NCBI GenBank assembly: GCA_048772705.1
Contig: JBLWGC010000121.1
Location: forward strand, 186,001 to 250,000
Reading direction: 5' to 3'
Length of the DNA stretch: 64,000 nucleotides
Source: Leidyana gryllorum EB-2025a
Taxonomy: Eukaryota; Protista; Apicomplexa
Shown here one piece after another: positions 1 through 18,334 of the stretch; position 1 is the stretch's first letter, and each line of letters starts with the position of its first letter. Under the pieces are notes generated by a model. That model was not told where the DNA came from, did not search any database, and saw only the letters and a program-made list of their open reading frames with translations. The position numbers and the translations under genes are program-made.

Positions 1-75
1 GGTGTGTCCGCTAACACCCACCTGGCTGCTCTGGCGCCAGTTGCAGCCATCCTCGGAATGAAGTATCTCGCTTAG
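1..75 (+). CDS. 3-prime end of a mini-mucin family gene (truncated by window edge)
   Basis: Frame 1 reads GVSANTHLAALAPVAAILGMKYLA-stop, matching the P-x7-K-Y hydrophobic tail of the downstream family members; not in the ORF track. Confidence 0.7.
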   Translation, partial: GVSANTHLAALAPVAAILGMKYLA

Positions 76-1046
76 GTCTCACTAAACCTCACCGTATTTG
101 GTTTGGTGAATGCTGCCCATCAAGATGATCGGCGTCTTCATTGTATGAGTGCATCCGTTTGCAACAGCGAGCTCACTTATACCTCGGTTCATCCCACTTG
201 TCTGCGAGAGTCCTCTCGCACTTTTGGCCCAATTTTCCTACCAACCTATCAATCCACACTTTGTGGTGGCTGCTAAATACTCTTGTGAATATCTGACTCA
301 TCGAGATTGTGCCCTTGGGATCTGCAGCGACAGCTATCTTCGGCAGCGCGCTGACTGGTGCTGCCTGCAATCGTGATGAGCTTAATTTGGGGTCGCCATC
401 AAACTTTGAATGAGTCGTTGATCAGAGAACTAGTTGGCACCGACTGACCCAAATTCGTTATCAGTGAACACTGGGACTCCAATTCGCACTCAACTCCTCG
501 GGATAATGGTGTGGGGGGACAGTTTCGTCGGCGGGCGGGGATATATTCACCAGAAAATTCCAACTGCTAACGCACACACTGCCTAAATTATTACTTTTTG
601 TCACCCGACTATGACCGGCTGCTCGCTGTGTTGACTTTGATTGTCGCAGTCGTGGATCTATTGCTGTTCTCACCATTCGACGAGTGTACTGACATTCTGA
701 TCGACATGCATGTGCTGCTAGGGTGGTCAAATGTATGAGAGATCACCATGAGATTGCCGTCTCCCTGGATTTGCCTGTAATATCGAGGTCTCCCGGGTAG
801 TCAGAGGGTAAGAGACACTGGGAGAAAGTATGTAGATCTCCGATGCTTTCCGAGTCGGAGGCCCTTTTTCGCCTATGATGAAATATCGTGTCAGGAAGAC
901 TCGCTGCGATAAACACCTTTAGGGAGCCTTTCTTGTGCCCATTGTGTGTTCGATCTGTCTCCACTGGGACTAACGAGTGTGACGGTTGAGATAATTGTAA
1001 GCTTTGAGCGATCGTTCCTTCTTTGTTGGTGCTGTATCACGTCTAC

Positions 1047-1286
1047 ATGAAATTCATCACTCTTTTCTCCGTTGCCCTCACCCTCGTCGCACTTGCCGAC
1101 GTTTCGGAAGTGGCACCCTCTGGACCTCCTTCTGCTGGATCGGAACCCACAGTCACGTCCCCGACACCGACTCCCACCACTCCTACGCCGACAACAACCT
1201 CCACCAACAAGTCTGGAGCTGAACAGTATATCACAGGAGTCACCCCATTGGCCGCATTGGTAGCGGTGAAGTATTGGGCATTTTGA
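1047..1286 (+). CDS. 79-aa Thr/Pro-rich predicted GPI-anchored mini-mucin
   Basis: ATG at 1047; signal peptide MKFITLFSVALTLVALA, PTPTPTT core, tail SGAEQYITGVTPLAALVAVKYWAF. Confidence 0.85.
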   Translation: MKFITLFSVALTLVALADVSEVAPSGPPSAGSEPTVTSPTPTPTTPTPTTTSTNKSGAEQYITGVTPLAALVAVKYWAF

Positions 1287-1294
1287 TTAGGTCG

Positions 1295-1486
1295 GCCTGA
1301 AGTGTAGACAGTGTGTCTGCCTGAAGTGTAGACAGTGTGTCTGCCTGAAGTGTAGACAGTGTGTCTGCCTGAAGTGTAGACAGTGTGTCTGCCTGAAGCG
1401 TAGACAGTGTGTCTGCCTGAAGTGTAGACAGTGTGTCTGCCTGAAGCGTAGACAGTGTGTCTGCCTGAAGTGTAGACAGTGTGTCT
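1295..1486. repeat. 24-bp minisatellite, 8 tandem copies
   Basis: Unit GCCTGAAG(T/C)GTAGACAGTGTGTCT; copies 5 and 7 carry the C variant; no spacers. Confidence 0.95.
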
Positions 1487-1691
1487 GTCTACTGCATTGT
1501 ATTTTGTTGTGTTAGCAATATCGTCTGAGCGTGGCCGGTGGGTGGGGAACTTCGTGCAACACGGGCAGCAAGGCGAGTTGGGGAAGATCATCGAATTTGG
1601 GATTCACTGTGTGCGAAAAGGGTGACCCGCCATTTATTGTTGAGTTTTCTGACTGTTGTTCTAGAATTATTAGCCATCCGCTAGGCATACA

Positions 1692-2303
1692 ATGAGATTA
1701 CTCACATTTGCTACAATTACCTACACGGCTCTGGCCTCCGAGCTGTTTGGAGACCGCTTCCCTGCCATTCGGGAAGATGTCGCAATTGCAGAGGCCGACG
1801 CCTCCACTTATCCTATCGAATTTACTTCCTCAGAGGAGCTGACCGAGGAATCGTCGTCGGAGATAGTTGAAGACACTATCACGGAATCGCTTGACGATCC
1901 CTCCACACAACCGACACCTGAACCCACAGCGGCAACATTCCCAAGAGATACCGAGACCACCGTGGAGATTAGTACGGCATCACACTCCGATGTTGGGACA
2001 ACCCTCACGGGAACGGACGAAGAGACGGAAACCGTGACCACTGCTGGAAAGAGCACCGAGACCGGAGTTGAACTCAGTACACTCTCCGTTCCGGGCCAAG
2101 GAACGATGGAGACCAGCAGTAAAGTTGGAGAAGACTCTTGGAGTGTGTCGACGTCCACCGACGCTTCTTCCGACCCGACAGTGCGAGGGACCTCTACTGC
2201 ACGCACAACAAGCAGCACCACAATGGCCTCCGGCGCGGGGCAAATTTTCACTGGTGTGACGCCGCTGGGTGTGCTGTTGGCAATGAAGTATCTTACAGCC
2301 TGA
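1692..2303 (+). CDS. 203-aa acidic Ser/Thr-rich predicted GPI-anchored mucin-like protein
   Basis: Hydrophobic N-terminus, T/S/E-rich body, tail SGAGQIFTGVTPLGVLLAMKYLTA. Confidence 0.85.
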   Translation: MRLLTFATITYTALASELFGDRFPAIREDVAIAEADASTYPIEFTSSEELTEESSSEIVEDTITESLDDPSTQPTPEPTAATFPRDTETTVEISTASHSDVGTTLTGTDEETETVTTAGKSTETGVELSTLSVPGQGTMETSSKVGEDSWSVSTSTDASSDPTVRGTSTARTTSSTTMASGAGQIFTGVTPLGVLLAMKYLTA

Positions 2304-2748
2304 GTCACGGATTCGTCACTCGGCTGGATTTTTGGTCATTGAAATAGATGTCATTCTAAAGGTGCTTGAAAATGTTGAATTTCATCCTCCAGGACGAGGA
2401 TGATTAACAATTGGACATCTTTTTCCGGGTGCTTTGCCATGAACTTGTGTGCTCAGTAGGCTTCATCGATACTCAAACCCACAATCCTTAAGCCTAGGAC
2501 AGGCTGTTCAGTACCATTCAACCTACGCAGCTTCCCCCTACAAACTCTGGTTCTCCGTTCTGAGGACCGGTCTAACTTGACAACATTCCCTCGACTCTGA
2601 CATCACTTTAACAGCTCAATAATGATCAACTCTTTTCTCTCAATTTCACAATTGAGCTGGCGTCTCCCTCAGCAGCAGATTTTCAGATCGCACACCCACC
2701 CCACAGGAACAAAAAGATCTTTTGTGTATTCGTAGATTACATATCACA

Positions 2749-3129
2749 ATGAAGCTACTCTCTCTATGTGCTCTTGTGTCCCTTACCATCGCGCAGGACC
2801 CTCTCCGCTTGGTTACGACATCATGGAGCACTGACACTGACACTGACACCACCACTGACACTACTACTACATACTCGACCTCCATTGAAACGGAGACGGA
2901 GACGGAGACAGAAACGGGAAATGACATTCCAGGAGGGACCACAGCGACAACTTCCACGTCCACTGAATCAATAACGTACACTACATCTAGTGTGCTGCCG
3001 TCAGACACGGCCGAAACGTGGAGCTTCAGCGGATCTGGCACCACTACAACGGCCTCTGGCACGAAGCAGTACTTTGCAGGTTTGACCCCCTTTGCGGGAC
3101 TTGTGGCACTGAAGTTCATGGCATATTGA
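2749..3129 (+). CDS. 126-aa Thr-rich predicted GPI-anchored mucin-like protein
   Basis: ATG at 2749; signal MKLLSLCALVSLTIA then Q; TD and ET dipeptide runs; tail SGTKQYFAGLTPFAGLVALKFMAY. Confidence 0.85.
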   Translation: MKLLSLCALVSLTIAQDPLRLVTTSWSTDTDTDTTTDTTTTYSTSIETETETETETGNDIPGGTTATTSTSTESITYTTSSVLPSDTAETWSFSGSGTTTTASGTKQYFAGLTPFAGLVALKFMAY

Positions 3130-3500
3130 GCTGTTGACTTCAGCCACTCTTTTGGGAGTTTCTTTACGGGACTCCTGGCAGTGAAGGCTATGGTATATTG
3201 AGTCTTTGACTTTGGTCAATTCAGTATAGTTTTTTGGTTGCTTCATTCTCAGCCTTCTTCGAAATCGAAATGTCAATTGCCCTCCCTCTTGGGAGGCGTG
3301 CCGTTCAAAGTTTCCGCATAGTGATGCGCAATGGAGGTGACTCCAATCGACTGAACTAAACCAAGAAGAGATGCGCCTCTGGCACTGTTAAGGGTCAACA
3401 ACACAGAGCTGTGGTTATTTTGCGTTGCACACTTTGGAACTTTGCCTTTCCAATCAACCAAATAGTTCCATTCGAGATTGGGGCAGGGATCAGTAATAAT

Positions 3501-3704
3501 ATGAAGTTCCTTACTCTCTTCACTGTTGTCTTTGCCACTTTGGCCGCCGCCCAGGAGGACGAGCCCAGTACAACGACGACCACCACCACTACGACTCCCA
3601 CAACAACGACTTCGACGACTACGAAGAAAGACGGAGCGATCAATTATCTCGCGGGAGTGACTCCTCTGGTCGGTCTGTTGACTCTGAAACAGATCGCTCT
3701 GTGA
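3501..3704 (+). CDS. 67-aa poly-Thr mini-mucin, copy 1 of 6
   Basis: ATG at 3501; near-identical to five other copies; signal peptide, poly-Thr, DGAINYLAGVTPLVGLLTLKQIAL tail. Confidence 0.9.
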   Translation: MKFLTLFTVVFATLAAAQEDEPSTTTTTTTTTPTTTTSTTTKKDGAINYLAGVTPLVGLLTLKQIAL

Positions 3705-4055
3705 GATTTCAGTCCGTTTTTGGAAAGATCAGTTTTGTGATTCTATCATAAGTGTTCCTCCTAAACCTCGTTGCCTCTTGAGAGTCGCGCCGCATTCACC
3801 TTCGGGTCGCGTCAGCTTCGGTGTTGAGTGGTTCTGGGAGTGCGAGTGCTCAAGTTGTAAGTTACTGGGTTAGTAGCGTCGAGCATCGTGGTCTAGCTTC
3901 TGTCTTTTGCAGAGCAATAAACTACCGCTACGGACGTTCTGTGTCTAGGAAGTTGTTACTTTCCTGTCACCTCTCAGCTGTTGTCTTTCTCACCTCCCAT
4001 TGGGAAACGAGATCGTCACATTTTTTGGTCTATTATATCGCTCAAGCAATCATTG

Positions 4056-5810
4056 ATGGCGAAATCCGATTTGCTAATAAGTTGTCTCTATCGTTCCCAA
4101 ATATGGCAGTTCAGTGATATTGCGTCGATCGTGAAGCTTTGGATCCTCAGTGGTGCGTCTCAGGAGGACTTGGAGAATCACCTCTCCAAATGTCGAGTGC
4201 CCATTGACCACAATGAATGGAAACAATTAGAAGAATTGATCAAAGAATATCCCAATGTACTCGAAGCTTTGAAGAAAATCAGATCGCTGAAATTAGACGT
4301 CTCTGTTCCCTTCGCCGCTGCTTTGACTCTCTGCGGGGACGATGGCTCTGCGATCCGAGAGCTCTCGGTGACACTGACACCACAGTCGCTGCGGGATTTG
4401 CCGTCTCCCATCGTGCTGGACTCTGAATCCTTGGAACGGATTCGGGTCTGCTCAAAGTATTTTTCGCGACGCACTGTTGTGACGCTCGTCTGCCCAAACT
4501 TACAGTGTTTGACTTTGGATAAGGAGAGCACTGAAGGAGGAGTCTCCCACTGGAAACTCAATGCAATGAAGGGTTCGAGCTTTTGGACCGTAGAGGGCCG
4601 CACAGACCTCGTGATCGATGTGTTCGACGATAGGTGGTTCACCATCAATCCCACGAATCCCAACGATCGAGACAGTCTCTGCGCGGTTCTGCCGCCAAAG
4701 GAGGGACCCAACAACACTTTCGCGCGATCGTTCGAGGAGCTGTGGGAGCATTGGGTCTCAAATCCAGTTTCCGTTGAGATCTCAGAATGCATCTGGGAGA
4801 AACTCCAGACTCTTCCAATTTGGAACACCACCTTTATGCCTCAGCCCGCCGATATGGAGAGAGTCATTGCACAAAGCTCTGATAGAGAAGTCCAAGTGGA
4901 CGCGTTGCCCCTCGACCGAGAAACAGTTGCGGCGTCGCGGGGAGACGGGACGCCTCCTTTTGGCCACGTTGAGTCCATAGAGGTCGACATGGGGACCTTC
5001 AACTTCGCGGTCCCTCCGCAGCCTGTTGCTGGTGTCAAGCGATACGAAATTCGACTCACCGGAAGAGTGCCGGGGTATATCACCCCGGTGGAGCCGCTCG
5101 ACATCGCCGAAGACTGTCAAGTCGTTGCGGTCTTCAGAAAGCGACCTGAATGGATCCGCAAAGAGCACGTTTTGCTTAGCTACACACACCGTGCCATTAT
5201 CGTATTTTTGGTGACACTATGTGAGGCGTGGAATGTGTCGTATGTGGTTCTGGATTATGAAGAGTCACACTTATCATCGGAGATCGCGAAGTGGTATGTG
5301 GTCGGGGATGCGATACGGAGACGCCGAGGTGGTCGACCGATCCGGATGAGTTTCCCCGCTGTGCGAGACAATGGCTCATCGACGAATAAATGTTTGTTGG
5401 AAGTCCTCTCGGGAGAGTACAGAAACAAAACACTGTATCCCTTCTTTCGAGACATTCCAAGCAGAGTGGCTGACTATCTGCACTTCATTGACAAAGTCGG
5501 TTGGGAAGAGAGATTGATCACTACTTCCCTAGAAATGATCGAGACCGATATCCAAGTCATGCACACTGCGACATCACACTCAACGCTCCAACTCTACAAA
5601 GAGGCGCTCGAGACAGTGGATCTGCAGAGCTTTCCGTCAACCGGGTTCAGCAGTATTCAAATCGGTTCAATAAATACGACATCAGTGTGGTTTAGGGAAC
5701 AGCTTAGCAACAGGCAGCGTTGTGAGGGGCTCAAAGCGTTGGGAGTGCACTATGACTTTGCCGTCCCGCCGCCATGGTGCACGGAGCTGTTTCCACAGTC
5801 GCCTGAGTGA
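4056..5810 (+). CDS. 584-aa hypothetical protein, possible degenerate F-box/LRR-like
   Basis: Long intronless ORF, first ATG 4056; LxxLxL-like units (IRSLKLDV, IRELSVTL, CPNLQCLTLD); decayed paralogue at about 7.6-9.0 kb. Confidence 0.7.
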   Translation: MAKSDLLISCLYRSQIWQFSDIASIVKLWILSGASQEDLENHLSKCRVPIDHNEWKQLEELIKEYPNVLEALKKIRSLKLDVSVPFAAALTLCGDDGSAIRELSVTLTPQSLRDLPSPIVLDSESLERIRVCSKYFSRRTVVTLVCPNLQCLTLDKESTEGGVSHWKLNAMKGSSFWTVEGRTDLVIDVFDDRWFTINPTNPNDRDSLCAVLPPKEGPNNTFARSFEELWEHWVSNPVSVEISECIWEKLQTLPIWNTTFMPQPADMERVIAQSSDREVQVDALPLDRETVAASRGDGTPPFGHVESIEVDMGTFNFAVPPQPVAGVKRYEIRLTGRVPGYITPVEPLDIAEDCQVVAVFRKRPEWIRKEHVLLSYTHRAIIVFLVTLCEAWNVSYVVLDYEESHLSSEIAKWYVVGDAIRRRRGGRPIRMSFPAVRDNGSSTNKCLLEVLSGEYRNKTLYPFFRDIPSRVADYLHFIDKVGWEERLITTSLEMIETDIQVMHTATSHSTLQLYKEALETVDLQSFPSTGFSSIQIGSINTTSVWFREQLSNRQRCEGLKALGVHYDFAVPPPWCTELFPQSPE

Positions 5811-6680
5811 AGCTGCCGCTGCTCGACTGGAATTGTGGACATCACGTCGAGGCCTGTTTCTGTTTGTCCGCCATTTTCATTGTTTGACGCGACTCCAATC
5901 CAAACCAGTTTCAGGCAGCGCAACTGTGTTCCTTCGACTGAACGTCTCAATGTATCCGGACAGCGCATACGCAGGCCAGAGACCTTTTGTGACCGGTTGC
6001 ACTGGCTACTTATCTCGCAGATGATCGTCCACCTCGATCGAGGCTGCAAGATCTGACGACCTCAAAAGATGCATCCGGTGTGATTCTTAGTCCGTCTCAC
6101 GCCATCGTTCCTCCGCTCAATCAATCAATTCAATTCGTGTTGAACGCCACGCCGCGTGTGTGTCTCTTCACAGTGTGAGGTGACCAAACCGGCCGTAACG
6201 AACTCCGACGAGGCAGCGGGAAGACGACTTGGGCATAGCAGTACAGTGCTGAGCGGGGACCACATGCACACATAGGAGCGACAACGAGAATAATCTCATA
6301 TGCCGCTTACTCTTGCGGGCCTCCTCTGCTTGGTTCGATCCATTGATTGAGAAAGGTCGTATGTAAGTGACCGCCGTCGCTCAGTACTGTTGCGCCGGAT
6401 CTCAACAGCGGTATAAGTACCGGCGACCAGCTCTCAACCCACCACGATATCCTGTCGAGGCCGAAGCTGTTCGTATATCGGTGCTTCGCCCACACCGCAC
6501 TCTCAACAGAGTCTATTGGCTTTGAACAGAGTGCTGTCGAGACTTCGATCCGTTTTTTGACAACAACACTTTGAGACGTCGGATCTTAGCCGACGTGTGG
6601 GTGTCAAGTGTCTGTCTCCTCCCGTCTCCGTTGTTGGGACTTCCCCATTTGAGAGATAACACTTCTTCACATCGCTAAAA

Positions 6681-6884
6681 ATGAAGTTTCTCACTCTCTT
6701 CACTGTTGTCTTTGCCACTTTGGCCGCCGCCCAGGAGGACGAGCCCAGTACAACGACGACCACCACCACTACGACTCCCACAACAACGACTTCGACGACT
6801 ACGAAGAAAGACGGAGCGATCAATTATCTCGCGGGAGTGACTCCTCTGGTCGGTCTGTTGACTTTGAAACAGATCGCTTTTTGA
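6681..6884 (+). CDS. 67-aa poly-Thr mini-mucin, copy 2 (ends IAF)
   Basis: ORF track; near-identical to other copies. Confidence 0.9.
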   Translation: MKFLTLFTVVFATLAAAQEDEPSTTTTTTTTTPTTTTSTTTKKDGAINYLAGVTPLVGLLTLKQIAF

Positions 6885-7056
6885 GTTTTCTTCAAATTTG
6901 AAATGATCAGTTTTGTGATTCTATTGTGAATGTCGGAACATTGTTAACGAGACGTCGGATCTTAGCCGACGTGTGGGTGTCAAGTGTCTGTCTCCTCCCG
7001 TCTCCGTTGTTGGGACTTCCCCATTTGAGAGATAACACTTCTTCAGATCGCTAAAA

Positions 7057-7260
7057 ATGAAGTTCCTTACTCTCTTCACTGTTGTCTTTGCCACTTTGGC
7101 CGCCGCCCAGGAGGACGAGCCCAGTACAACGACGACCACCACCACTACGACTCCCACAACAACGACTTCGACGACTACGAAGAAAGACGGAGCGATCAAT
7201 TATCTCGCGGGAGTGACCCCTCTGGTCGCTCTGTTGACTCTGAAACAGATCGCTCTTTGA
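7057..7260 (+). CDS. 67-aa poly-Thr mini-mucin, copy 3 (ends IAL)
   Basis: ORF track; one G-to-A change in the tail. Confidence 0.9.
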   Translation: MKFLTLFTVVFATLAAAQEDEPSTTTTTTTTTPTTTTSTTTKKDGAINYLAGVTPLVALLTLKQIAL

Positions 7261-7629
7261 GATTTCAGTCCGTTTTTGGAAAGATCAGTTGTGTGATCCT
7301 TTTAAAGTGTGCCTACTGAACATCACTGATTCTGAGCATCGAAGATTGTGTTATACCAACCCACACTCCCGATCAACACTCAACTTGTTATTGATCAGTC
7401 TCCAGACTCAGTCTCATTGGGCCTAACCTTCGGGGTGTTTTTTCAATTCAATTCAACTATAACCAGTCGGGGCGTCAGGGACATCTGGGGTCGCAACCAT
7501 CAGTTACAGTCAGTGATCCTCCGCTAGCAGAAGCCGTTTCAGATCAATTTCGGCGCAATCAATCGCTCTTTTGAGCGTCGGGGCGCTGACGCGCCTCTTA
7601 CTGGTATCGCGCTGGGAATCGATTTTACA

Positions 7630-9013
7630 ACGAAAGTGTTGCTGTCGTTCCCAAATATGGCGGCAGTTCAGCGGTATAGTGTCGACTTTCAAGCTTTGGA
7701 TTGTCAGCCGTGTATATTGATTGAAGAGGAGAACTCCCTCTCCCATTGTTGCGTGACCATTGGCCGCACTGTATGGCAACAATTGGGAGGATCGATGAAA
7801 GAATACCCCAATGTACTCAAACCTCTGACGATAATCCGATCGCTGAAATTAGACGTCTCTGTTTCGTTCCCCGCTGCTTTGACTCTCTGTGTAGCCATTG
7901 GCTCTACGATTCGAGAGCTCTCAGTGACACTGACACCACAGTCGCTGCGGGATTTGCCGTTTCCCATTGTACTGAAGTGAACCACTGGAGGGATTTCGGG
8001 TCAGCTTTGTGGACTGCTGCCCAACGATGGGACGTCATCCATCAATCTCAGCCATCGAGACAGTCTCTGCGCATTTTTGCCGCCAAAGGGGGCCCCGATA
8101 GGACTTTGGCGCGATCTTTCGACGAGCTGTGGGAGCATTGGGTTGCAGACCCGCTTTTCATTGTGATCTCAGAGCGCATCCGGGAGAAACTCCAACATCT
8201 CTCAATTTCGCACACCACCTTTAAGCCTCAGGTCGCCGATGTGCAGAACTCTCTGAAACAGAGATTCAATTAGACGTGTTGCCACTCATCGAGAAACAGT
8301 GGCGGCGTCGCTGGGAGACTTCGCGCTTCCTTTGAGCACGTCGAGTCCAGAGAGGTCGACATGGGGGCCTTCGACTTCGCAGCCTGTCGCCGGTGTCCAA
8401 CGGGTCGAAATTCTACTCACCGGAGACGTGCCATATAGGAGCACTGCTGTGGATCCACTCGTCATCGCAAAGAAGTGTCGTCAAGTCGTTGAGATGCCTG
8501 AATGGATCGTTGTTGAGGAGACGACCCACCCACACTGATAAAAAAGCCCACCATCGTATTTTTGATAACACTACGAGAGGCGTCGAATGGATCGTATGTG
8601 GGTGGCACTGTATTATGAGTCGTACCGGTTGCCATCTGAGATGGGACAATGGTGGCTGATCGCGGATGGGATACGGAGACGTGAAAAAGGTCGGCCGATC
8701 GGATGAGTTTCCCCATTGCGCGAGCGGCGGCGACGAATAAACGGTAATTAGAACTCCTCTCACCACAGTACAGAAAGTTAACACTGTACACTTTTGGTCG
8801 ACATCGAAAGGAATCTCTGCCGATGATCGAGTACTCTCCGTCAACCAGATTCAGGAGTACTCCGATCGGTTCAATCGAAACGATCTCAGTGTGGTTCAGG
8901 GAACCGCTCAGCGAAAGACAGCGCTGTGGAAGGCTCAGAGCCTTAGGTTACACTATGACTTCGCCGTCCGGCCGCCATGGTGCACGGAGCTGTTTCCACA
9001 GTCACCTGAGTGA
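7630..9013 (+). pseudogene. Decayed paralogue of the 4056-5810 gene
   Basis: Colinear DNA matches (TCGTTCCCAAATATGGC; KEYPNVL...IRSLKLDVSV; LWEHWV; GCCATGGTGCACGGAGCTGTTTCCACAGTC to TGA at 9011-9013) broken by frameshifts, stops and deletions. Confidence 0.9.
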
Positions 9014-9380
9014 AGTCGCCGTCTTCAAACTTGGCCCAAATCTTTGGAGCATTGAAATTGCGCTTTCTCTCCACTCAGTGGGAGGCACGCACCACACGAC
9101 AGAGCCGGGAGAGAGGATTGATTGCGGCGGTCATTGTCGAACAACAGATTGCACAACTGCCCTTATGCTGCCCTTTATTTGGAATCCTTCGCGAATCCCA
9201 CTCCATCCAGACGGGGCCAACACGGGTTCTCGCCATCCGCACCGGTGTGGTCTCCCCAAAACTTGGACACTCTGCCTACGTTGTATACCTGTTGTATCTA
9301 CGGACTTACTTCGCCGTCTTGGCCGCGCGCTCGCCTCAGCGACCCGTACACAAATGGTTCACCATCTTTTGGAGACGTGA

Positions 9381-9538
9381 CCCCCCAATGTGGTCTATCG
9401 CCACGGTGTCGAAGGGCGGGGTGCTGTGTGGTCGCCGGGGTCAGCTGTGTTCCCTACTGGCCAGATCTGAGACTGTCGTAGGACCTCTGCTACTTGGTGG
9501 CAGAGCACTACCTGCTTCCGTAAGGTTGCGGACACATA
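9381..9538 (-). mobile_element. Possible relic of an LTR-retrotransposon (Ty3/Gypsy-like) integrase
   Basis: Minus strand reads YVSATLRKQVVLCH...LRQSQIWPV then, after a frameshift, PPFDTVAIDHIGG, resembling the integrase N-terminal region and first catalytic Asp motif. Confidence 0.35.
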
Positions 9539-9867
9539 GGCCCCCATGGCCTCAAAGCGGCCAGGACTTCCTCCGGGATTCTGGCCTCAGGTACAGGCCG
9601 TGTAGCCTGGCTGTACCACTACGTACGAGTGTAGCATTCCAGACCGCGAGCTGAAATCTTTGTCTGTCAGTCAGTCAGTCAGTCAGTTTTGTGACTAAAA
9701 GGGTCACTGAACGTAACCCACAGAACGAAGAGCCTAACAAAGTAAGTGCAGCAGAGCCGAGATAGAGTGTGAGGGTAAATTAAAAGAGAACGTTTCAAAC
9801 CTCGTTTTGAGTCATTCAACTAAACAATGAATACTCAAGCTGATCTTTCCAAAAACGGACTGAAATC

Positions 9868-10071
9868 TCAAAGAGCGATCTGTTTCAGAGTCAACAGACC
9901 GACCAGAGGAGTCACTCCCGCGAGATAATTGATCGCTCCGTCTTTCTTCGTAGTCGTCGAAGTCGTTGTTGTGGGAGTCGTAGTGGTGGTGGTCGTCGTT
10001 GTACTGGGCTCGTCCTCCTGGGCGGCGGCCAAAGTGGCAAAGACAACAGTGAAGAGAGTAAGGAACTTCAT
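9868..10071 (-). CDS. 67-aa poly-Thr mini-mucin, copy 4 (ends IAL)
   Basis: ORF track. Confidence 0.9.
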   Translation of the reverse strand: MKFLTLFTVVFATLAAAQEDEPSTTTTTTTTTPTTTTSTTTKKDGAINYLAGVTPLVGLLTLKQIAL

Positions 10072-10243
10072 TTTTAGCGATCTGAAGAAGTGTTATCTCT
10101 CAAATGGGGAAGTCCCAACAAGGGAGACGGGAGGAGACAGACACTTGACACCCACACGTCGGCTAAGATCCGACGTCTCGTTAACAATGTTCCGACATTC
10201 ACAATAGAATCACAAAACTGATCATTTCAAATTTGAAGAAAAC

Positions 10244-10447
10244 TCAAAAAGCGATCTGTTTCAAAGTCAACAGACCGACCAGAGGAGTCACTCCCGCGAG
10301 ATAATTGATCGCTCCGTCTTTCTTCGTAGTCGTCGAAGTCGTTGTTGTGGGAGTCGTAGTGGTGGTGGTCGTCGTTGTACTGGGCTCGTCCTCCTGGCCC
10401 GCGGCCAAAGTGGCAAAGACAACAGTGAAGACAGTAAGGAACTTCAT
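10244..10447 (-). CDS. 67-aa poly-Thr mini-mucin, copy 5 (two signal-peptide substitutions, ends IAF)
   Basis: ORF track; L6V and A17G. Confidence 0.9.
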   Translation of the reverse strand: MKFLTVFTVVFATLAAGQEDEPSTTTTTTTTTPTTTTSTTTKKDGAINYLAGVTPLVGLLTLKQIAF

Positions 10448-10619
10448 TTTTAGCGATCTGAAGAAGTGTTATCTCTCAAATGGGGAAGTCCCAACAACGG
10501 AGACGGGAGGAGACAGACACTTGACACCCACACGTCGGCTAAGATCCGACATCTCGTTAACAATGTTCCGACATTCACAATAGAATCACAAAACTGATCA
10601 TTTCAAATTTGAAGAAAAC

Positions 10620-10823
10620 TCAAAAAGCGATCTGTTTCAAAGTCAACAGACCGACCAGAGGAGTCACTCCCGCGAGATAATTGATCGCTCCGTCTTTCTT
10701 CGTAGTCGTCGAAGTCGTTGTTGTGGGAGTCGTAGTGGTGGTGGTCGTCGTTGTACTGGGCTCGTCCTCCTGGGCGGCGGCCAAAGTGGCAAAGACAACA
10801 GTGAAGAGAGTAAGGAACTTCAT
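10620..10823 (-). CDS. 67-aa poly-Thr mini-mucin, copy 6 (ends IAF, unique upstream flank)
   Basis: ORF track; ATG at 10823. Confidence 0.9.
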   Translation of the reverse strand: MKFLTLFTVVFATLAAAQEDEPSTTTTTTTTTPTTTTSTTTKKDGAINYLAGVTPLVGLLTLKQIAF

Positions 10824-11225
10824 TCTCTATGCTCAAACTTTGAAGATACCTGGGTGTGATTCACGAGAAAGTCCCAAGGGAGACTGGGACACACGAAGAT
10901 CACAACAGCAAAGATTGACGTCCCCTGACCACTTTTGGAAGTTGTGGACTTTAGCACAGGCGGGGCCACTATGAGATGTTCAGATTTTATTGCTTCTACC
11001 GGAAAAAGCTTGAGTGGTGTTCAATCTGCCTGATTGCCGTGCCGAAGGGAGGGAATTAGAAAGGTACATTTGTAGTGAAAGTCGATGCGTGGGGCCCGGT
11101 GTCTCGGTGGCGTAGTGCGACCGACTCCAGAATTGTGTCTGTGACTGGGTGACCTATCGTAGGTGTGCGAGTTTGTTGTAAACTGTAAAGTAAAACTCTG
11201 TGACCTATCTTGAAATTTGACAGCA

Positions 11226-11417
11226 ATGAAGTTTGTGGCAGCTTTGGCGATAGTCTTCGGTGTTGTGGCTACGGCTCAAGATACTGAAGTTGAAACCACT
11301 GTTCCATCGAGTGCTCAGGCTTCGGCAAGTACTGCTGCGCCCTCTGGCAGCCCACCATACCTCAATGGTATAACCCCAGTGTTTGGATTGCTGGCTTTGA
11401 AGTATTGGAACTTTTAG
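11226..11417 (+). CDS. 63-aa predicted GPI-anchored mini-mucin
   Basis: ATG 11226; signal MKFVAALAIVFGVVATA then Q; tail SGSPPYLNGITPVFGLLALKYWNF. Confidence 0.85.
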   Translation: MKFVAALAIVFGVVATAQDTEVETTVPSSAQASASTAAPSGSPPYLNGITPVFGLLALKYWNF

Positions 11418-11608
11418 ATAGACTGAATGATCTTTGATTTGAATGCCTCTTGTTGACCGAGTCAAAAAGTATTTGTACCACATTCGCCTGTGGTGAAGTG
11501 TGTGAGAGTTTGTGCAATGAGCAGCCCAGAGTGTGTGTGTCTCCGAATGGATGGAAAGTGAAGAGATTTGGGTCAAGTTTGACTCCCAGTGCCCCTTATT
11601 AATTACAA

Positions 11609-12073
11609 ATGCGAGTTTGGATCTCACTGTTGGTGGTGACTTTGTACACGAAGGGTGTCGAGGCGGTTGAAGACACGGAAGCTACCGTATATATGAGCAT
11701 TAGCAGTGGTTCTGCTAAGGGATTAGAGACTCTGAAGCCAGAGGAAACGACAGCTGATGAGAGCGACGAAATAGCGTCGCGAGATACAACGGCAGCTGAG
11801 ACAACGGTGGCAGAGACGACTGCGCAAGTAGAAACTGTGGTACTTGACACTACACTCGATGATACTACAATTGTTACTGACACCGGCGAAGAAACCTTGG
11901 CCGCGAATGAAACAAGTTCTTCAGTGGCTAGTGATTTCGGCTACATGATGACTGACACTGGTGATGTGGATTTAAATGAAGAAGATACCGATGAGGCAAT
12001 GTGGGATGGAGAATTCCCCTTATTTACAATGATAGGCGGTCTCAGTAGCGCTGTGATTGTCGGACTCTTATAG
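11609..12073 (+). CDS. 154-aa acidic Thr-rich surface protein with hydrophobic C-terminus
   Basis: Signal-like N-terminus, ETT/DTT repeats, tail DGEFPLFTMIGGLSSAVIVGLL. Confidence 0.8.
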   Translation: MRVWISLLVVTLYTKGVEAVEDTEATVYMSISSGSAKGLETLKPEETTADESDEIASRDTTAAETTVAETTAQVETVVLDTTLDDTTIVTDTGEETLAANETSSSVASDFGYMMTDTGDVDLNEEDTDEAMWDGEFPLFTMIGGLSSAVIVGLL

Positions 12074-12160
12074 ACAGAGTATGGTGCCGGCTGCTGCACC
12101 TCCGACGCACGAAAGGTGCGTGTGTGTTCCGGTGCACCCTGAAGAGAGACACAACTGAAG

Positions 12161-12343
12161 ATGAAATTCACCAGCATCCTTTTCCTTGCTTTCGGCTTCT
12201 TGGCCGTTGCCAACGCCCAGTCGGATACCACCAAGGCTGAAGACTCTACCACCTCCGCGGGAAGCAGCACCAGCAAGAGCGGAGTTGCGCCTTTCATGGT
12301 TCTTGGAGTTCCGATGATCACCATGCTGGCCTACAACATGTGA
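12161..12343 (+). CDS. 60-aa predicted GPI-anchored peptide precursor
   Basis: Signal MKFTSILFLAFGFLAVANA, about 21-aa S/T-rich core, tail SGVAPFMVLGVPMITMLAYNM. Confidence 0.8.
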   Translation: MKFTSILFLAFGFLAVANAQSDTTKAEDSTTSAGSSTSKSGVAPFMVLGVPMITMLAYNM

Positions 12344-12398
12344 ACTTTTGATGTGATTGAACACTGAGTGCCACTTGATTAGCAAATAAAAACAAAGA

Positions 12399-13766
12399 AT
12401 GTCCCACGGTAATTGTCACTGCCCGGTATGTGGCACTGCCGCGCCTATTGAATGCGCTGCCGGTCACAGTGCAAAAGCACGGTGCCCTGACTGCTCCTAT
12501 CCAATCAAGTTTGACAAATTCACCTACATACCCGGCATCCACCCACGACCTCTCGCCAATTTGATATGTGACGATTGTCACGAACCTATTGAGCCTTCGG
12601 CCTGTTGCGCGGCCCCAATGGTACTTTGGTGTGTCCTATGCGCTTCGGTAAGCCTCAGTGCCAGCCCTATAAGTCTGTATCAGCGAGAGCACAAGGTGGC
12701 ACTGACTCAAGACGGCCCCCAGCCTCAGTTCGTCACGCCCTACCATTCATCCCAGCTGCCCCCAGCGGCTGGCCCAGAACACTCTCAAGCCTCAACCATC
12801 GATGCCCACACTCCCCTACGATGGAGGTTAGAACAGAGCCTCCCCGAAATGGACCCTCGATTGGATGAGCTCTGGCGTCGATGGGGCGGCACACTGCTTC
12901 TCCATCACATTCTTGACACCTGGAGACCTGAAGCTGTGGCTGCGACTCTCTCTAACCGGGTGAAATATGGGTTCAGAACGGGAATACGCAATGCCATCGA
13001 CGTCACCATGGAACAGACTCACCAGCAGGCGGCGTCTTATTTTGTTCACGACGGATGTCCACGCTGCGGGTTTATCGTCGTTGTGCGTATCACGCGATAT
13101 GAGTTGTTCCTCGTATGCCGTATCTGCGATTGGAACAGAGCAGTTCCCAGAATGGCCTTATTGGGAGGTGAGTTGACAAATGTTCTTTTCAACCTGAACA
13201 CACATTCCCGCCTCGCAGCTGTCGAGAACCACGACTGTGTCGACCCTCTCATGTCGCCAAGAATCCATTCTTTGGGCCCCGTGAAGGACAGCGGTGACCG
13301 CGAGGCGCAAGTCGCGGCGGTGGAGTACCAATTGATGGACATCCATCTGCTCAATGGGGGACATATGATACCGCCACATTCTACAGAGGCCCTCCGCAAG
13401 TCTAATCATCAACGCATTCAGGCACTCACGAGCAATCAAAAAGTCACCTTGACTCATTTGCTCAGTTCCCTGGGCGTTGGGGCCATAGAAATGCTGAATA
13501 AAGGCACACCTTCCCACGAGCGCTGCAAGACTTGCGGTTTCACCATAGCAAAGAAGACTAATCTGACCTCAGTCTGCCCCCTCGGCTGTCTACCGCCCGT
13601 CGTTGCACTCAGCTGTGTCGAGGAATCCTGGGAAGACCTCGCCGACATCGGAGACGACTTCGAACAGGAAACCTCCACAGAACAGCGAGGAAGGGTGGGT
13701 GCCGGTGGGCAACGAGGACTTGCTCCTCAACCGCAACCACAGGAGCAATCAAGTCCCAACTGGTAG
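12399..13766 (+). CDS. 455-aa multi zinc-ribbon (CxxC) protein
   Basis: CPVC, CPDC, CDDC, CVLC, CPRC...CRIC and CKTC...CPLGC motifs; A-rich leader before the ATG. Confidence 0.7.
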   Translation: MSHGNCHCPVCGTAAPIECAAGHSAKARCPDCSYPIKFDKFTYIPGIHPRPLANLICDDCHEPIEPSACCAAPMVLWCVLCASVSLSASPISLYQREHKVALTQDGPQPQFVTPYHSSQLPPAAGPEHSQASTIDAHTPLRWRLEQSLPEMDPRLDELWRRWGGTLLLHHILDTWRPEAVAATLSNRVKYGFRTGIRNAIDVTMEQTHQQAASYFVHDGCPRCGFIVVVRITRYELFLVCRICDWNRAVPRMALLGGELTNVLFNLNTHSRLAAVENHDCVDPLMSPRIHSLGPVKDSGDREAQVAAVEYQLMDIHLLNGGHMIPPHSTEALRKSNHQRIQALTSNQKVTLTHLLSSLGVGAIEMLNKGTPSHERCKTCGFTIAKKTNLTSVCPLGCLPPVVALSCVEESWEDLADIGDDFEQETSTEQRGRVGAGGQRGLAPQPQPQEQSSPNW

Positions 13767-13860
13767 GACTCACTCACTTTCCAACATACGATAATCTGAT
13801 TAATATATAGGGTTGATGATCATTGACCGATTACTAAAGAAGAAAAGTTGATGAAATACG

Positions 13861-14733
13861 TCACACGCTGACCTCAGTGAAGGACTGCCTGGTGACTGCT
13901 ATGCGGAGGACGCGAATATAAAACGCTCCCTCCTCCACGTCTTTGACCGGGACACATTGGAGCTTGTCAACCCGGAAGGTACCACAAGTCTGATGGAGCT
14001 CTTGTAAAGTGTTCTTTGCATTCGACGAGACCGTCGCCTCCCGAAGCTCCACAACAGCCCTTGCCAGCCGCTCTTGGGTCGCCGCCCAGACAAGAAACAG
14101 CTCACGCAAGTTTGCTGCCGACTCAACAATCAACTTGGCCCCGTAGGAGCTGGCGAAAATGGCAGCATCTCGCATCACAGCGATACCCTCCCGCGCGTTC
14201 GGAAGCCATACTCCATCCAGTTGCGGAAGCTCCAGGTAGACGAGAGGGTGGTAATACCACAAGGAAAGACGGCTGCATTGACTGAGGTTCGCCGCGACGT
14301 GATCGAATAGCTCCTCAGCTGACGTCTCGGAATGCCACTTCAACTCCTTCACAACCAGAGGTCTGACGCGTAGACTAAGCGACTTTGTCGCAATATCAAA
14401 TGGTGCCTTTGTTCGACTCTCCAACTCGATGACCAGTTCTTCTTCCGCCCTCGCGATTATTGTATCCAGCAGTGTCTGATAAAAGGCCCAGTCGTCCTCG
14501 TCGGCGTCTTCTTCCAACCGCACTCGGACCGATCTCACATTATGCAGCGATGACGAAATCCACTCATCCAGTATTTCAGCCGAGTAAGATCGTCTCAAAA
14601 GTCCAAGATCTCGAATCGTCAATTGATCTCCACCCAGGGCGACATGGAGGCTCCATGAATCTCGCACCAAATGCTCAAATGCCGGGTGCTCGAGTCCTAG
14701 GAAACCTGCCAGCCGCGCCTGAGCTGCCAGCAT
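13861..14733 (-). CDS. 290-aa hypothetical protein, LRR-like strands
   Basis: Intronless ORF with AAA-ATG start; NVRSVRVRL, VKELKWH, CSRLSLW. Confidence 0.65.
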   Translation of the reverse strand: MLAAQARLAGFLGLEHPAFEHLVRDSWSLHVALGGDQLTIRDLGLLRRSYSAEILDEWISSSLHNVRSVRVRLEEDADEDDWAFYQTLLDTIIARAEEELVIELESRTKAPFDIATKSLSLRVRPLVVKELKWHSETSAEELFDHVAANLSQCSRLSLWYYHPLVYLELPQLDGVWLPNAREGIAVMRDAAIFASSYGAKLIVESAANLRELFLVWAATQERLARAVVELREATVSSNAKNTLQELHQTCGTFRVDKLQCVPVKDVEEGAFYIRVLRIAVTRQSFTEVSV

Positions 14734-14754
14734 TTTATAATGAAAAAAAATACT

Positions 14755-15867
14755 TTAGCGACAATTCCAGGTGCGAGGCTCAAAGTACTTCTGATGCCAT
14801 TCCTCAGCACGTAATTTCAGAGTAGAGGAATCCCAACTACACAGCATACTCAGTGAAGTACTCAGATCAGAGATAAATCGATCGACGCTCGGTAGCAGCC
14901 CCTCCATTCCGCGGGAACGTAACCGGTTCCTCTTCCATACAATTCTTCGGTCGTCCGCGATCACCGTCCGCATCATTCTTTCGTACTCTTCAGCCTTCGC
15001 TTCCGGAACGCAGGCGTCTACTAATCTAATTTCCAGGCCTTGATTCATTGCGGGTTGCGAATGCGAACTGGCATCAAGTTTGGCGTCAGCCACTCTTCGC
15101 TCATTGACAGGAGACGCAGTTTCCGGACACTCAAAAGGATAATGTTCCATCCATATACTCCAGAGAGCGACGCAGAGCAGGAAATGACGAACATTACCCA
15201 GCCGCGCAATCCTTACATTATGGCAGTGAGCAGCCAAAACAGCTTTGAGATCCTCCAATGTTTGACACCCTGAGCCAATACAACAACGGATCATGACGTC
15301 TCGTGGGATTTGGGTGCGTGGCGCCAGTGGCAAAGCCAATTGTTGCAGTTTTGATGGAGGCCCGTTTGGCCCGTCGAAAAATCGTGTGCACACATATTCT
15401 GTAAGAGTGACGGGTGTGCCTTCTGGGTAGGAAGGTACTGCAATGCCAAGGCACCGGAGCCGGGGATACCATTGGGGGGTGACATTGAAGACGGTTGTTC
15501 CTGGTCGATGTTCGTTGGAGGGGACAATGGGGCCATCAAAGACAAAGCTTTCGAGATGAGGGCCAGTGGTAGAAAGAAAGTTAATTAGATCGCAGAATCT
15601 AAATCCAGCGGTGGGATCGCACATTTGTTGCTCCGCTGTTTCCTGGTACAGGAAGGTGACAAGTCTGGGCATTATTGATGATAAGAAGGGCACTAGCACA
15701 GTGTCACGAAAGGGTTCCGAGTGTAACATTGAGGGAGTGATGGACACATTTTGTGTATATTTGACAAGCACAGTAAGTATTTCGGGGATGTCGTGAGCAA
15801 ATTGCAGGGAAGTATCTAAAGGGAGGAACGCGAGTGTGTGAGCAAGGCAGTCATTGGATAGGTACAT
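14755..15867 (-). CDS. F-box-like / LRR-like protein (about 370 aa)
   Basis: N-terminus MYLSNDCLAHTLAFLPLD resembles an F-box; PRLVTFLY, PHLESFVF, PRLRCLGI, SKLQQLAL repeats; alternative ATG at 15912. Confidence 0.7.
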   Translation of the reverse strand: MYLSNDCLAHTLAFLPLDTSLQFAHDIPEILTVLVKYTQNVSITPSMLHSEPFRDTVLVPFLSSIMPRLVTFLYQETAEQQMCDPTAGFRFCDLINFLSTTGPHLESFVFDGPIVPSNEHRPGTTVFNVTPQWYPRLRCLGIAVPSYPEGTPVTLTEYVCTRFFDGPNGPPSKLQQLALPLAPRTQIPRDVMIRCCIGSGCQTLEDLKAVLAAHCHNVRIARLGNVRHFLLCVALWSIWMEHYPFECPETASPVNERRVADAKLDASSHSQPAMNQGLEIRLVDACVPEAKAEEYERMMRTVIADDRRIVWKRNRLRSRGMEGLLPSVDRFISDLSTSLSMLCSWDSSTLKLRAEEWHQKYFEPRTWNCR

Positions 15868-15871
15868 ATTG

Positions 15872-17140
15872 TTATGGAGTATCGACAAAGACTTTTCGAG
15901 GGGTCCAGGCATTGGGGAAAAAGTGGGTGGTGATCCAGTTGTAAACCCTATCTGTGACTACCTGGTGGGTCCATTCTGGAAAGACGATTTGGACGAGCTC
16001 TTCGACATTCTGGAGCCTCAAATGAGGGAAGTCGGGTGTGGCTTGGTCGACCAAAATTCCGACATTTTCCTTGAGAATCTGGATGCATGGGAGTGATTTG
16101 ATGACTTGGTAGATCGCTAGAAATGAAAGGAAGTTGGCTCGCGGGAGCAAGACTTCCATGTTGCCGATCTGAATGATTGGGAGTGTTTGTTGTTGTTCAG
16201 GCGTGTCATAGATGCGGCGCAGTTCGGCAGCACAGCTGAGGGTGACTAGACTCGGTAGGGAGGAACAGTAGTCGAAGCGTAAGGCTTGAGGGTAGAAGCC
16301 GCGTTGATGGAGATTGAGCATCCTGTGAACCACATCGAAGCTCTGCTTCCCGAGTACATCCTGAGTGACAACACATCGTGGAAGGTTTAAAAGTACCCTT
16401 TCACTGATTATATCCGGATTGAATTCCATCCAGGCGGTCTCATCCAGGATCATCTCCACTAACTTTGGCGATTTTTGGATCTTTGGGAGAAAGTTGTCTC
16501 TCGCAATTATGACGCTCGCCAATAGCTCGTCTTCGCTCGCCGGACAAGTCCACTGGTATGACCGCAGATTTGGGCACCCGTCATCTGGCGACGACCTTTG
16601 CTGATTTTTCTCGAACGACGCTTCCAGGACGACGAGAGGGACAAACTTGTTGGGCAAAGGGATTGTTCGTCCGTGGACGATGAAAGTGCGCAGCGTATGC
16701 CGAGCTAAGGTGACGAGCTCTAAAAGCTCAATGATAGAAGCCGCTGGCACCTCATATTGAAGCAGTGGAGACGCGTCTCCCTCAGTGAGGCCCACTTGGA
16801 TCACTTGTTGGTTGCGGTTGAATTGGTGGCCGAGTCCGCCGTTGGGGACCGGGTCGACTCGCAGAGCAGCGTACCGAGGGAAGTGGAGTTTCCGAATGCA
16901 TTTTATAGTTCGAAGAAAGGGTAACGACCTCCGGAATGTGGTTCGGGCGGTGGCCCAATTGGGGACACTGGTACAGTCTCTCGCAAATTGGGTCAATTTA
17001 GCGTTATAGTCAAGGTGTGTGAAGATCAGTTCATCACGATAAAATGCTTTCCACGCCGTGCAAACTCGTCGCAGACGCGTGCATTCCTCAAATGATAGTA
17101 TTTCCCGCGCTAATATGCGATAAACCTCAGATAATGACAT
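15872..17140 (-). CDS. F-box-like / LRR-like protein (422 aa)
   Basis: LSEVYRILAREILSFEECTRLRRVCTAW fits the F-box L..VC..W end; CPNLRSYQW, PKLVEMIL. Confidence 0.75.
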   Translation of the reverse strand: MSLSEVYRILAREILSFEECTRLRRVCTAWKAFYRDELIFTHLDYNAKLTQFARDCTSVPNWATARTTFRRSLPFLRTIKCIRKLHFPRYAALRVDPVPNGGLGHQFNRNQQVIQVGLTEGDASPLLQYEVPAASIIELLELVTLARHTLRTFIVHGRTIPLPNKFVPLVVLEASFEKNQQRSSPDDGCPNLRSYQWTCPASEDELLASVIIARDNFLPKIQKSPKLVEMILDETAWMEFNPDIISERVLLNLPRCVVTQDVLGKQSFDVVHRMLNLHQRGFYPQALRFDYCSSLPSLVTLSCAAELRRIYDTPEQQQTLPIIQIGNMEVLLPRANFLSFLAIYQVIKSLPCIQILKENVGILVDQATPDFPHLRLQNVEELVQIVFPEWTHQVVTDRVYNWITTHFFPNAWTPRKVFVDTP

Positions 17141-17177
17141 ATTTCCACAACAAAGAAGCAGAAGATTTTAGACTAAA

Positions 17178-17750: not shown

Positions 17751-18334
17751 TGCTTGTACACGATAAAAATCAAATTGCTACTCCCTTTCCTGTCACAGTG
17801 GAGCCACCTACAAATTCATTCCAATTCCAAACAAACAAAGGATTCATCCAATTCGGACACCTCCAAAGGCCCAAAGCCGATCTGTCTCTTTCTGACTACG
17901 CCGCCTTTCACCCTCCGGAGGGCAAACAGTGCCCAAACATTCATCCCGCCCTGGCCGAACAGGATCGGATCACGAGGCCCAATTTCGGATGAGACACCGA
18001 GCCTCAAAACGGCCGGCTGGCGAGGCTGAACCCATCCAGAAGTGACTTCGCGGTCTCTTCAGAGTACTGAAACCCACTCGCGGACCAACTACGGTGCCAA
18101 CTTGAGACCCCCCTCCCGTCTCTGTCACCCAGTGGCGGGTTCGCCTTGCCGAGGCCTTTCCCGCCAATCCCGCCTTTGACGAGGCTCTAAGGATGTGTCA
18201 AACTCTGTCTCCCGTCTGAGGCCTCTATTTGGTCAAAGATTCGCTCGAGTGGCAATCTCATGGCGTGGCCGACATTTGGAGTGGTCATTAATATTATTTC
18301 CATCAAGTCATCATTTTTTGAGACTATAGTGGAG

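Follow-up and report, generated by a model that had tools for sequence, protein, structure and literature searches.

A single-locus cluster of small, mucin-like genes with GPI-type precursor anatomy in the gregarine Leidyana gryllorum

The window analysed here is a stretch of 64,000 nucleotides from a Leidyana gryllorum EB-2025a contig (JBLWGC010000121.1, positions 186,001 to 250,000), and its left end carries 13 open reading frames (ORFs), g1 to g13, all of which encode, without interruption, a hydrophobic N-terminal signal, a Ser/Thr-rich core, and a hydrophobic C-terminus (13/13). A fixed architecture filter found 12 matches in 12.6 kb, against a mean of 0.09 and a maximum of 2 in 300 dinucleotide shuffles, and 0 to 1 matches per block across 15 other 12.6-kb blocks of the same contig; g3 (1692-2303) is overlooked by the filter, the hydrophobicity of its signal being too low. 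All but one of the 13 genes have A or G at -3 relative to the start codon. The genes and the elements interspersed among them are listed below (positions in the window).

g1: -194 to 75, of which the window holds 1 to 75 (3' end), plus strand; 89-aa precursor from C121:185806, mature part ~49 aa, z 8.2; tail subtype KSG..HLAALAP..KYLA (within 1 to 75)
g2: 1047 to 1286, plus strand; 79 aa, P/T-rich core, omega S56, mature part ~39 aa, z 17.5
Minisatellite: 1291 to 1487; 24-bp unit, 8.2 copies, immediately after the g2 stop
g3: 1692 to 2303, plus strand; 203 aa, acidic T/S/E core, omega S180, mature part ~165 aa, z 11.1
g4: 2749 to 3129, plus strand; 126 aa, TD/ET dipeptide repeats, omega S103, mature part ~88 aa, z 15.2
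g5: 3501 to 3704, plus strand; first of six near-identical 67-aa copies, poly-Thr core, omega D44, mature part ~27 aa with 66% S/T, z 12.6
584-aa ORF: 4056 to 5810, plus strand; interspersed and not of the family, weak F-box match (E 0.022)
g6: 6681 to 6884, plus strand; copy of the 67-aa gene, 376-bp unit
g7: 7057 to 7260, plus strand; a further 67-aa copy (376-bp unit)
Duplicate of the 584-aa ORF: 7637 to 9021, plus strand; decayed and frameshifted, 71% to 83% nucleotide identity, between the inverted arms
g8: 9868 to 10071, minus strand; copy of the 67-aa gene in the inverted arm
g9: 10244 to 10447, minus strand; 67-aa gene copy whose signal peptide carries two substitutions
g10: 10620 to 10823, minus strand; copy of the 67-aa gene
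g11: 11226 to 11417, plus strand; 63 aa, S/A-rich core, omega S40, mature part ~23 aa, z 15.9
g12: 11609 to 12073, plus strand; acidic ORF of 154 aa resembling a mucin, with a signal and a hydrophobic C-terminus; z -0.1 for the tail and -0.5 for the signal
g13: 12161 to 12343, plus strand; 60 aa, omega S40, 20-aa tail, mature part ~21 aa

The first-pass annotation had described at least 13 small intronless ORFs, cores of about 21 to 165 aa, and members mostly shorter than 80 aa. All 13 were located ("intronless" denoting continuous reading frames only), mature lengths of 21 to 165 aa agree with cleavage sites placed by hand, and 9 of the 13 precursors are below 80 aa. Its further statement that the cores differ freely holds across the 8 gene types into which the ORFs fall, but not among the six ORFs that are 94% to 100% identical copies of the 67-aa gene. 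Likewise, the common architecture it proposed extends to every ORF, whereas common descent does not: a homologous tail of 23 to 24 aa links 11 ORFs of the window to a twelfth member, g0, located 13 kb upstream, where the cluster continues past the left edge of the window. Judged by its scores, g12 is unrelated by descent to this family and shares only its architecture; its C-terminus (19-aa Kyte–Doolittle [KD] hydropathy 1.94) could be either a GPI signal or a tail-less transmembrane helix. The shorter g13, missed by the tail-only model (tail z 2.4, signal z 4.0), is probably a distant member.

The precursors have the anatomy expected of GPI-anchored proteins, as had been claimed. A GPI site was defined by an omega residue from the set S/N/D/G/A/C, small residues at omega+1 and omega+2, and a distance of about 17 to 31 residues from the end. 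Throughout the family, omega is S or D only, omega+1 is an invariant G, and omega+2 is A, S, T, or V, with g12 fitting poorly. The terminal hydrophobic stretch, from omega+9 to the end, has a KD value of 1.0 to 1.9 over 12 to 16 aa, one Lys included, and is weakest in g11 and g13; no member has a cytosolic tail. The best 19-residue hydropathy of only 0.8 to 1.6 is weak for a transmembrane helix and thus argues against a spanning segment. At the other end, rule-based analysis found a hydrophobic stretch with small residues at -3 and -1 in all precursors, least pronounced in g3.

Between these ends, the mature parts are low-complexity sequences with 29% to 66% S/T and little in common beyond composition. 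The cores are acidic, lack Cys, and contain no Pfam domain above the cut-off; subthreshold matches to New_glue, Mucin, and SSP160 were compositional and were rejected.

Comparison of the tails between types yielded a pS of 0.72 and a pN of 0.34, and for the tails of g0 and g1 the values were 0.74 and 0.15. Synonymous sites are therefore saturated while the tail is conserved, which points to genes of considerable age that are subject to coding selection, with the tail under purifying selection. Upstream of the genes, no convincing shared motif was found (best k-mer p ~5e-5, uncorrected for thousands of k-mers), and positions 1 to 14000 contain no Rfam families.

A search of the genome with the tail model, as the first-pass annotation had advised, returned members at this locus only, a count that covers genes sharing the tail. 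The sole off-locus match (C92, E 0.12) proved to be a proteasome alpha subunit read out of frame and was rejected. Word searches with g1 and with a profile were blank, as were a HMMER search run in full against 1.84 billion representatives and a search of JGI metagenomes. An exact look-up showed that the protein collection lacks even the conserved genes found in this window, so that these blanks say little. Restriction to this lineage would be compatible with these results, a weak test given that this genome is absent from the protein collection. As to named families, the TcMUC/TcSMUG profile (PF01456) reached 16.8 bits against a cut-off of 34.7, for the core of one member only and on composition; the CD24 profile (PF14984) had no hmmscan match at E ≤ 1; and database searches gave no match to CpMuc1-7, with little power for short, low-complexity queries. 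We found no description of small clustered GPI-type mucins for gregarines.

The design itself has several precedents, so that the first-pass claim of a distinctive system was overstated: the locus is real, yet of an ordinary kind. The TcSMUG S and L genes of Trypanosoma cruzi likewise are very small ORFs encoding a signal, a Thr-rich core, and a GPI signal; they specify apo-mucins of ~7 kDa with up to 50% Thr (PMC3828161), which in the insect-gut stage serve in protease resistance and adhesion (PMC3828161, PMC9097677). They belong to an unrelated lineage, and TcSMUG L, unlike the cluster, keeps a conserved mature N-terminal peptide. The closest apicomplexan precedent is CpMuc1-7 (cgd2_390-450), seven small tandem mucin genes at one locus with low similarity and a patchy distribution across species (PMC5146892, PMC12688253). 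That cluster is subtelomeric, whereas the gregarine cluster is followed by another ~95 kb of its 293-kb contig and differs further in its common homologous tail and in the amplification of one member to six copies. Native CpMuc4 showed neither lectin binding nor a deglycosylation shift, and predicted O-glycosylation can thus fail (PMC12688253). In T. cruzi, MASP and TcMUC similarly have conserved N- and C-terminal signals around a variable, repetitive middle (PMC2691823); MASP is dispersed and makes up ~6% of its genome, whereas the 12 to 13 genes of the gregarine family all sit at one locus, and synonymous sites are saturated when its types are compared. Procyclins of T. brucei are small, GPI-anchored, acidic dipeptide-repeat proteins of the insect-gut surface (PMC9097677), recalling the ET/TD repeats of g4. 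The EP/GPEET repeats of procyclins are absent from the cluster. Procyclins are not known to be O-GalNAc mucins, and the analogy is loose. Vertebrate CD24 and CD52 are made as precursors of 60 to 80 aa that yield GPI glycopeptides of ~12 to 30 aa, and CD24, a tiny GPI mucin, was the best named Atlas look-alike (0.85 and 0.81, both <0.9, with 137 to 151 shared features, values to be taken as leads only). The likeness to CD24 and CD52 is one of convergent design.

Elsewhere in the genome, a profile search identified PIG-A at C230 (E 8e-21) and pairs of GT2 and ricin-B domains, of the ppGalNAc-transferase type, at no fewer than 6 loci (C202, C82, twice in C186, and twice in C133). For the transamidase, a single PIG-K-like motif occurs at C140:146786, with Y-F-H and V-S at the unspecified positions; it is not significant alone, because the pattern also gave two control matches. 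Next to the family lies a T/E/S repeat mucin of ~10,900 aa with at least 1 intron near its start, and other mucin-like neighbours include two ORFs of 127 to 129 aa with G-containing omega-like sites. An Argonaute gene is located 8 kb downstream.

We consider it probable, at about 70%, that the genes form an old family, confined to this one locus, whose products are small GPI-anchored glycopeptides of the mucin type, for which we infer cleavage, anchoring, glycosylation, location, and role; as O-glycopeptides of 21 to 165 aa in the glycocalyx, they would work like TcSMUG, CD24, and CpMuc1-7 while standing outside those families. The 15- to 19-aa signal would direct each precursor into the ER, where GPI transamidase would cleave after the S/D of the S/D-G-small motif and a glycolipid anchor would replace the tail. 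Golgi ppGalNAc-transferases would then glycosylate the core (35% to 66% S/T), giving stiff, acidic, protease-resistant rods on the plasma membrane that may add to the glycocalyx or, if shed, to the mucus trail, with possible roles in protection against gut proteases, lubrication, or adhesion. The 67-aa type has multiplied sixfold, with gene conversion apparently maintaining the likeness of the copies, as would be expected for a product needed in quantity.

Foremost among the alternatives, though improbable, is that the products are GPI-anchored or secreted but serve as stage-specific or minor components rather than as a general trophozoite coat, for example, as tethers of the gametocyst or oocyst wall or of sporozoites, or as proteins of the gamete surface or attachment site. 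The presence of only ~8 types at one locus favours such a role, as does the precedent of Cryptosporidium, in which mucins hold the sporozoites to the oocyst wall and CpMuc4/5 take part in attachment (PMC5146892). Conversely, the six homogenised copies suggest dosage and the neighbouring giant mucin a bulk glycan layer, neither of which fixes the stage.

It is also unlikely, and slightly more so, that the tail is retained as a 23-aa sequence-specific module, either a short membrane anchor whose Lys and aromatic residues would lie at the far interface, or a self-assembly segment through which the glycopeptides would bundle to form a coat, cyst wall, or mucus. Hydrophobicity of the tail is only moderate, and an invariant Lys stands 4 to 5 residues before its end; despite saturated synonymous sites, G, P, and K are invariant and a Y/F..G-x-T-P pattern recurs, and tail identity (48%) exceeds that of the signal peptide (30%), although the comparison was ungapped and may understate signal-peptide conservation. 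Furthermore, Pfam detected none of the transamidase subunits PIG-K, GAA1, PIG-T, and PIG-S in the genome in a loose, exon-by-exon first look run without a eukaryotic control. Against retention stand the S/D-G-small motif at the distance required for GPI attachment, with S/D falling exactly within the allowed omega set, the marginal hydropathy for a spanning helix, and a hydrophobic moment of 0.15 to 0.38, too low for an amphipathic helix; conserved processing signals flanking variable cores are, moreover, known from MASP (PMC2691823). A wider version, that the graded mini-mucins and the ~10,900-aa mucin together encode the gliding mucus or glycocalyx of the gregarine, with the tail a sequence-specific module rather than a disposable GPI signal, is similarly doubtful. 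In that setting, the tail could anchor the protein without being cleaved, mediate assembly, or direct sorting to the epicytic grooves as a code.

The number of copies could in part be an artefact of assembly, a very improbable explanation that draws on the near identity of the six copies and on a 716-bp inverted arm around g8 that is 99% complementary to 6573-7288. The copies, however, are all distinct in DNA (1 to 7 codon differences per pair), their flanks are unlike, 250 kb of contig contain zero N, and the eight distinct types would be unaffected even so; the six look as if homogenised by gene conversion. Least likely of all is a prepropeptide, akin to antimicrobial or venom peptide precursors, with the S/T core as pro-region and the C-terminal 23 aa as a bioactive peptide released at a basic site. 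In its favour, KK or K directly precedes the tail in g0, g1, g2, g5 to g10, and g13, behind acidic cores, but g3, g4, and g11 carry the same tail without a basic residue there (which led us to reject a dibasic propeptide model as a general rule), the cores are mucin-like (35% to 66% S/T, 21 to 165 aa), and each tail bears a single positive charge and is low in hydrophobic moment.

For parasitologists, a small GPI-anchored mucin family is a design familiar from other parasites and no surprise. Gregarines possess a mucus trail and a glycocalyx of undetermined composition (PMC3849649), and a homology search of the Porospora genomes failed to recover counterparts of GP15/40, GP900, or the mucins of Cryptosporidium (PMC9250747). 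The locus provides named candidates for the gregarine glycocalyx and mucus that can be addressed with peptide antibodies and proteomics, and offers a search recipe based on architecture and tail instead of whole-protein homology. It also suggests that clustered small mucins may be common in kind to Cryptosporidium and at least one gregarine.

All 13 small open reading frames (ORFs) claimed by the first-pass annotation were found with uninterrupted frames (g1 to g13, in contig order). The first, g1, starts 194 nt upstream of the window, and the rest of it was taken from the upstream contig sequence. A filter with fixed criteria (hydrophobic start, S/T-rich polar core, and hydrophobic end) gave 12 matches in 12.6 kb, compared with 0.09 in dinucleotide shuffles, and 0 to 1 in each of 15 other blocks of the same contig (C121). 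The predicted mature parts, with cleavage sites placed by hand, span 21 to 165 aa, are 29% to 66% S/T, net acidic, and Cys-free. In about 6 types (g1, g4, g5–g10, g11, and g13), cleavage is predicted to leave an N-terminal Gln, which could cyclise and resist aminopeptidases. The assembly (15.5 Mb, 237 contigs; window C121:186001-250000, GC approximately 52%) contains full-length eukaryotic SSU rRNA and resembles that of Gregarina niphandrodes in size and GC (13.9 Mb, 53.8%; PMC9250747); the organism is probably a eugregarine of the Gregarina type. On contig C73, 2 complete SSU rRNA genes (457-2234, +; 3431-5209, −) face each other convergently as an inverted pair, with 1.2 kb between them.

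The ORF set stands, but it comprises 8 types and includes 1 unrelated neighbour of like build. Six genes (3501, 6681, 7057, 9868, 10244, and 10620) are copies of a single 67-aa gene, with 0 to 4 residue differences. Membership was assessed by leave-one-out comparison with shuffles preserving the polar/hydrophobic layout: g0–g5, including the upstream gene g0, and g11 share a specific tail (z 8 to 17), g13 (12161) is marginal (tail z 2.4, signal z 4.0), and g12 (11609) has no family likeness (tail z −0.1). Searching the whole assembly with tail and full-length profiles returned only genes of the locus and g0 (C121:172983, 13 kb upstream), counts that are lower bounds; unrelated mini-mucins elsewhere would escape such profiles. 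The sole off-locus match, a proteasome subunit read off-frame, was rejected. Together, the tail scores and profile search point to 12 clear members, 1 probable member (g13), and 1 look-alike neighbour (g12).

Between types, tails are 48% identical, with synonymous differences at saturation (pS approximately 0.7) and pN of 0.34, compared with 9% identity and pN of 0.74 for unrelated tails; signal peptides are 30% identical (pN 0.42). For g0 versus g1, tail pS is 0.74 and pN 0.15. Saturated pS combined with low tail pN shows that the types are old and their frames kept by purifying selection, which is the only evidence here for translation. The pair formed by g5 and a 584-aa gene has been duplicated, yielding g7 and a decayed copy. 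The 584-aa copies are 71% to 83% identical, and g5 and g7 differ at 2 synonymous sites and 1 replacement site; since protein-level selection would not keep synonymous sites so alike, gene conversion or later re-copying probably occurred.

The mucin-type stretch extends over approximately 60 kb, because a giant ORF and 2 smaller ones lie upstream.

Features on and around the locus
C121:138372-138761 and 139032-139415: two 127- to 129-aa ORFs (signal, S/T/A-rich part, hydrophobic tail), just before the giant ORF
C121:~139919-172778: giant mucin ORF, 10,816 codons, 32% T, 16% E, 15% S
C121:173.5k-185.6k (window −12337 to −354): F-box-like block of 2.7 kb, triplicated, ~96% identical
C121:182870-184091: retroelement-like fragment, inside the interruption between g0 and g1
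Window 20254-23311 (+): Argonaute with ArgoN, PAZ, L2, Mid, and Piwi; N-terminus RGG-rich

The giant ORF, 13 kb before the window, receives its signal peptide from a short upstream exon, ends in a hydrophobic C-terminus, and consists almost wholly of T/E/S/V/D repeats, with a 30-nt period near the end; to our knowledge, it is among the longest mucin-type ORFs in any protist. The tails of the 2 smaller ORFs have no clear homology to the family (z −0.6 and 2.7). The closest paralogs, g0 and g1, are parted by the F-box-like, repeat, and retroelement stretch, which includes 80- to 105-bp repeats at window −12337, −3504, and −459; within the window, the interruptions are the weakly F-box-like 584-aa ORF and its decayed duplicate. 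A 63-bp inverted repeat (95%, 18-nt loop; L012:7415-7558) lies approximately 250 nt past g0, and a 24-bp minisatellite of 8.2 copies (window 1291-1487), in which every unit contains a palindrome with 5-bp arms around a 3-bp gap, directly follows the g2 stop.

Beyond the family, the window holds a 455-aa orphan ORF (12399-13766, +), whose two ends each carry numerous CxxC pairs in the manner of a zinc ribbon, and tightly packed orphan ORFs of 290 to 420 aa (13861-19243), some with F-box-like N-termini, all without Pfam matches. Argonaute, which is absent from many apicomplexans, occupies 2 ORFs, presumably split by an intron. Its PIWI half has its best named relative in the gregarine Selenidium serpulae (36%) and matches unnamed Logan/JGI proteins at 45% to 77%; a related Logan contig (L034) carries 2 PIWI genes in tandem. 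A bacterial-looking, intronless class I SAM methyltransferase of 248 aa (36634-37380, +) may reflect gene transfer.

Every member has S or D, an invariant Gly, and then Ala, Ser, Thr, or Val, 23 to 24 residues before the end, followed by a 6-residue spacer and 15 to 16 residues of mean hydropathy 1.0 to 1.9 up to the stop. Established rules predict an omega site and GPI signal from this pattern. At 0.8 to 1.6, the highest hydropathy over 19 residues is weak for a transmembrane helix, and the hydrophobic moment of the tail is low. The genome encodes PIG-A (E 8e-21) and pairs GT2 with ricin-B matches, the ppGalNAc-T layout, at no fewer than 6 loci (C202, C82, 2 each on C186 and C133); at least 6 such genes are many for a 15-Mb genome. 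An exon-by-exon first look, run without a eukaryotic control, gave no Pfam match for PIG-K, GAA1, PIG-T, or PIG-S. A degenerate pattern that we take to represent the PIG-K N-terminal motif matched once (C140:146786, RYFHNYRHVSN); a control pattern matched twice, so the match is suggestive only through the fit of its unspecified positions. A GPI transamidase is likely in this organism.

No family relatives were found among 5.8 billion proteins (word search), 1.84 billion (HMMER), or JGI metagenomes, using short queries; the protein collection lacks even conserved proteins of this genome, so close relatives are barely sampled. Pfam gave solely sub-threshold, compositional matches, and the best named Atlas look-alike, CD24, scored under the Atlas reliability line. 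No description of gregarine GPI mucins was found in searches of openly accessible full-text papers. Gregarine mucus has no established composition (PMC3849649), and Porospora is without recognisable Cryptosporidium-type mucins (PMC9250747). Clear precedents in kind are TcSMUG (PMC3828161, PMC9097677), CpMuc, with 7 tandem genes (PMC5146892, PMC12688253), and MASP, in which conserved processing signals flank variable cores (PMC2691823). The earlier interpretation as a putative surface coat is partly supported, in its GPI-signal anatomy and in the presence of PIG-A and GT2/ricin genes, but the design is not distinctive, its kinds being known.

We favour, at a probability of about 0.7, GPI-anchored O-glycopeptides that would contribute to the glycocalyx and perhaps also enter the shed trail, with the 67-aa type amplified for higher dosage. 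That these peptides instead have a stage-specific or minor role is unlikely. Slightly less probable is an uncleaved tail acting sequence-specifically, to which tail conservation, the one odd feature, would lend weight, but MASP already provides conserved processing signals around variable cores. Inflation of copy number by the assembly, which would concern the 376-bp tandem unit and 716-bp inverted repeat (99%) in which the 67-aa copies are laid out, is highly improbable, and release as propeptides even more so. As predicted GPI-anchored O-glycopeptides, the family is new and apparently undescribed, though of a known kind; its design is unsurprising, and its members make a useful set of candidates for gregarine surface components.
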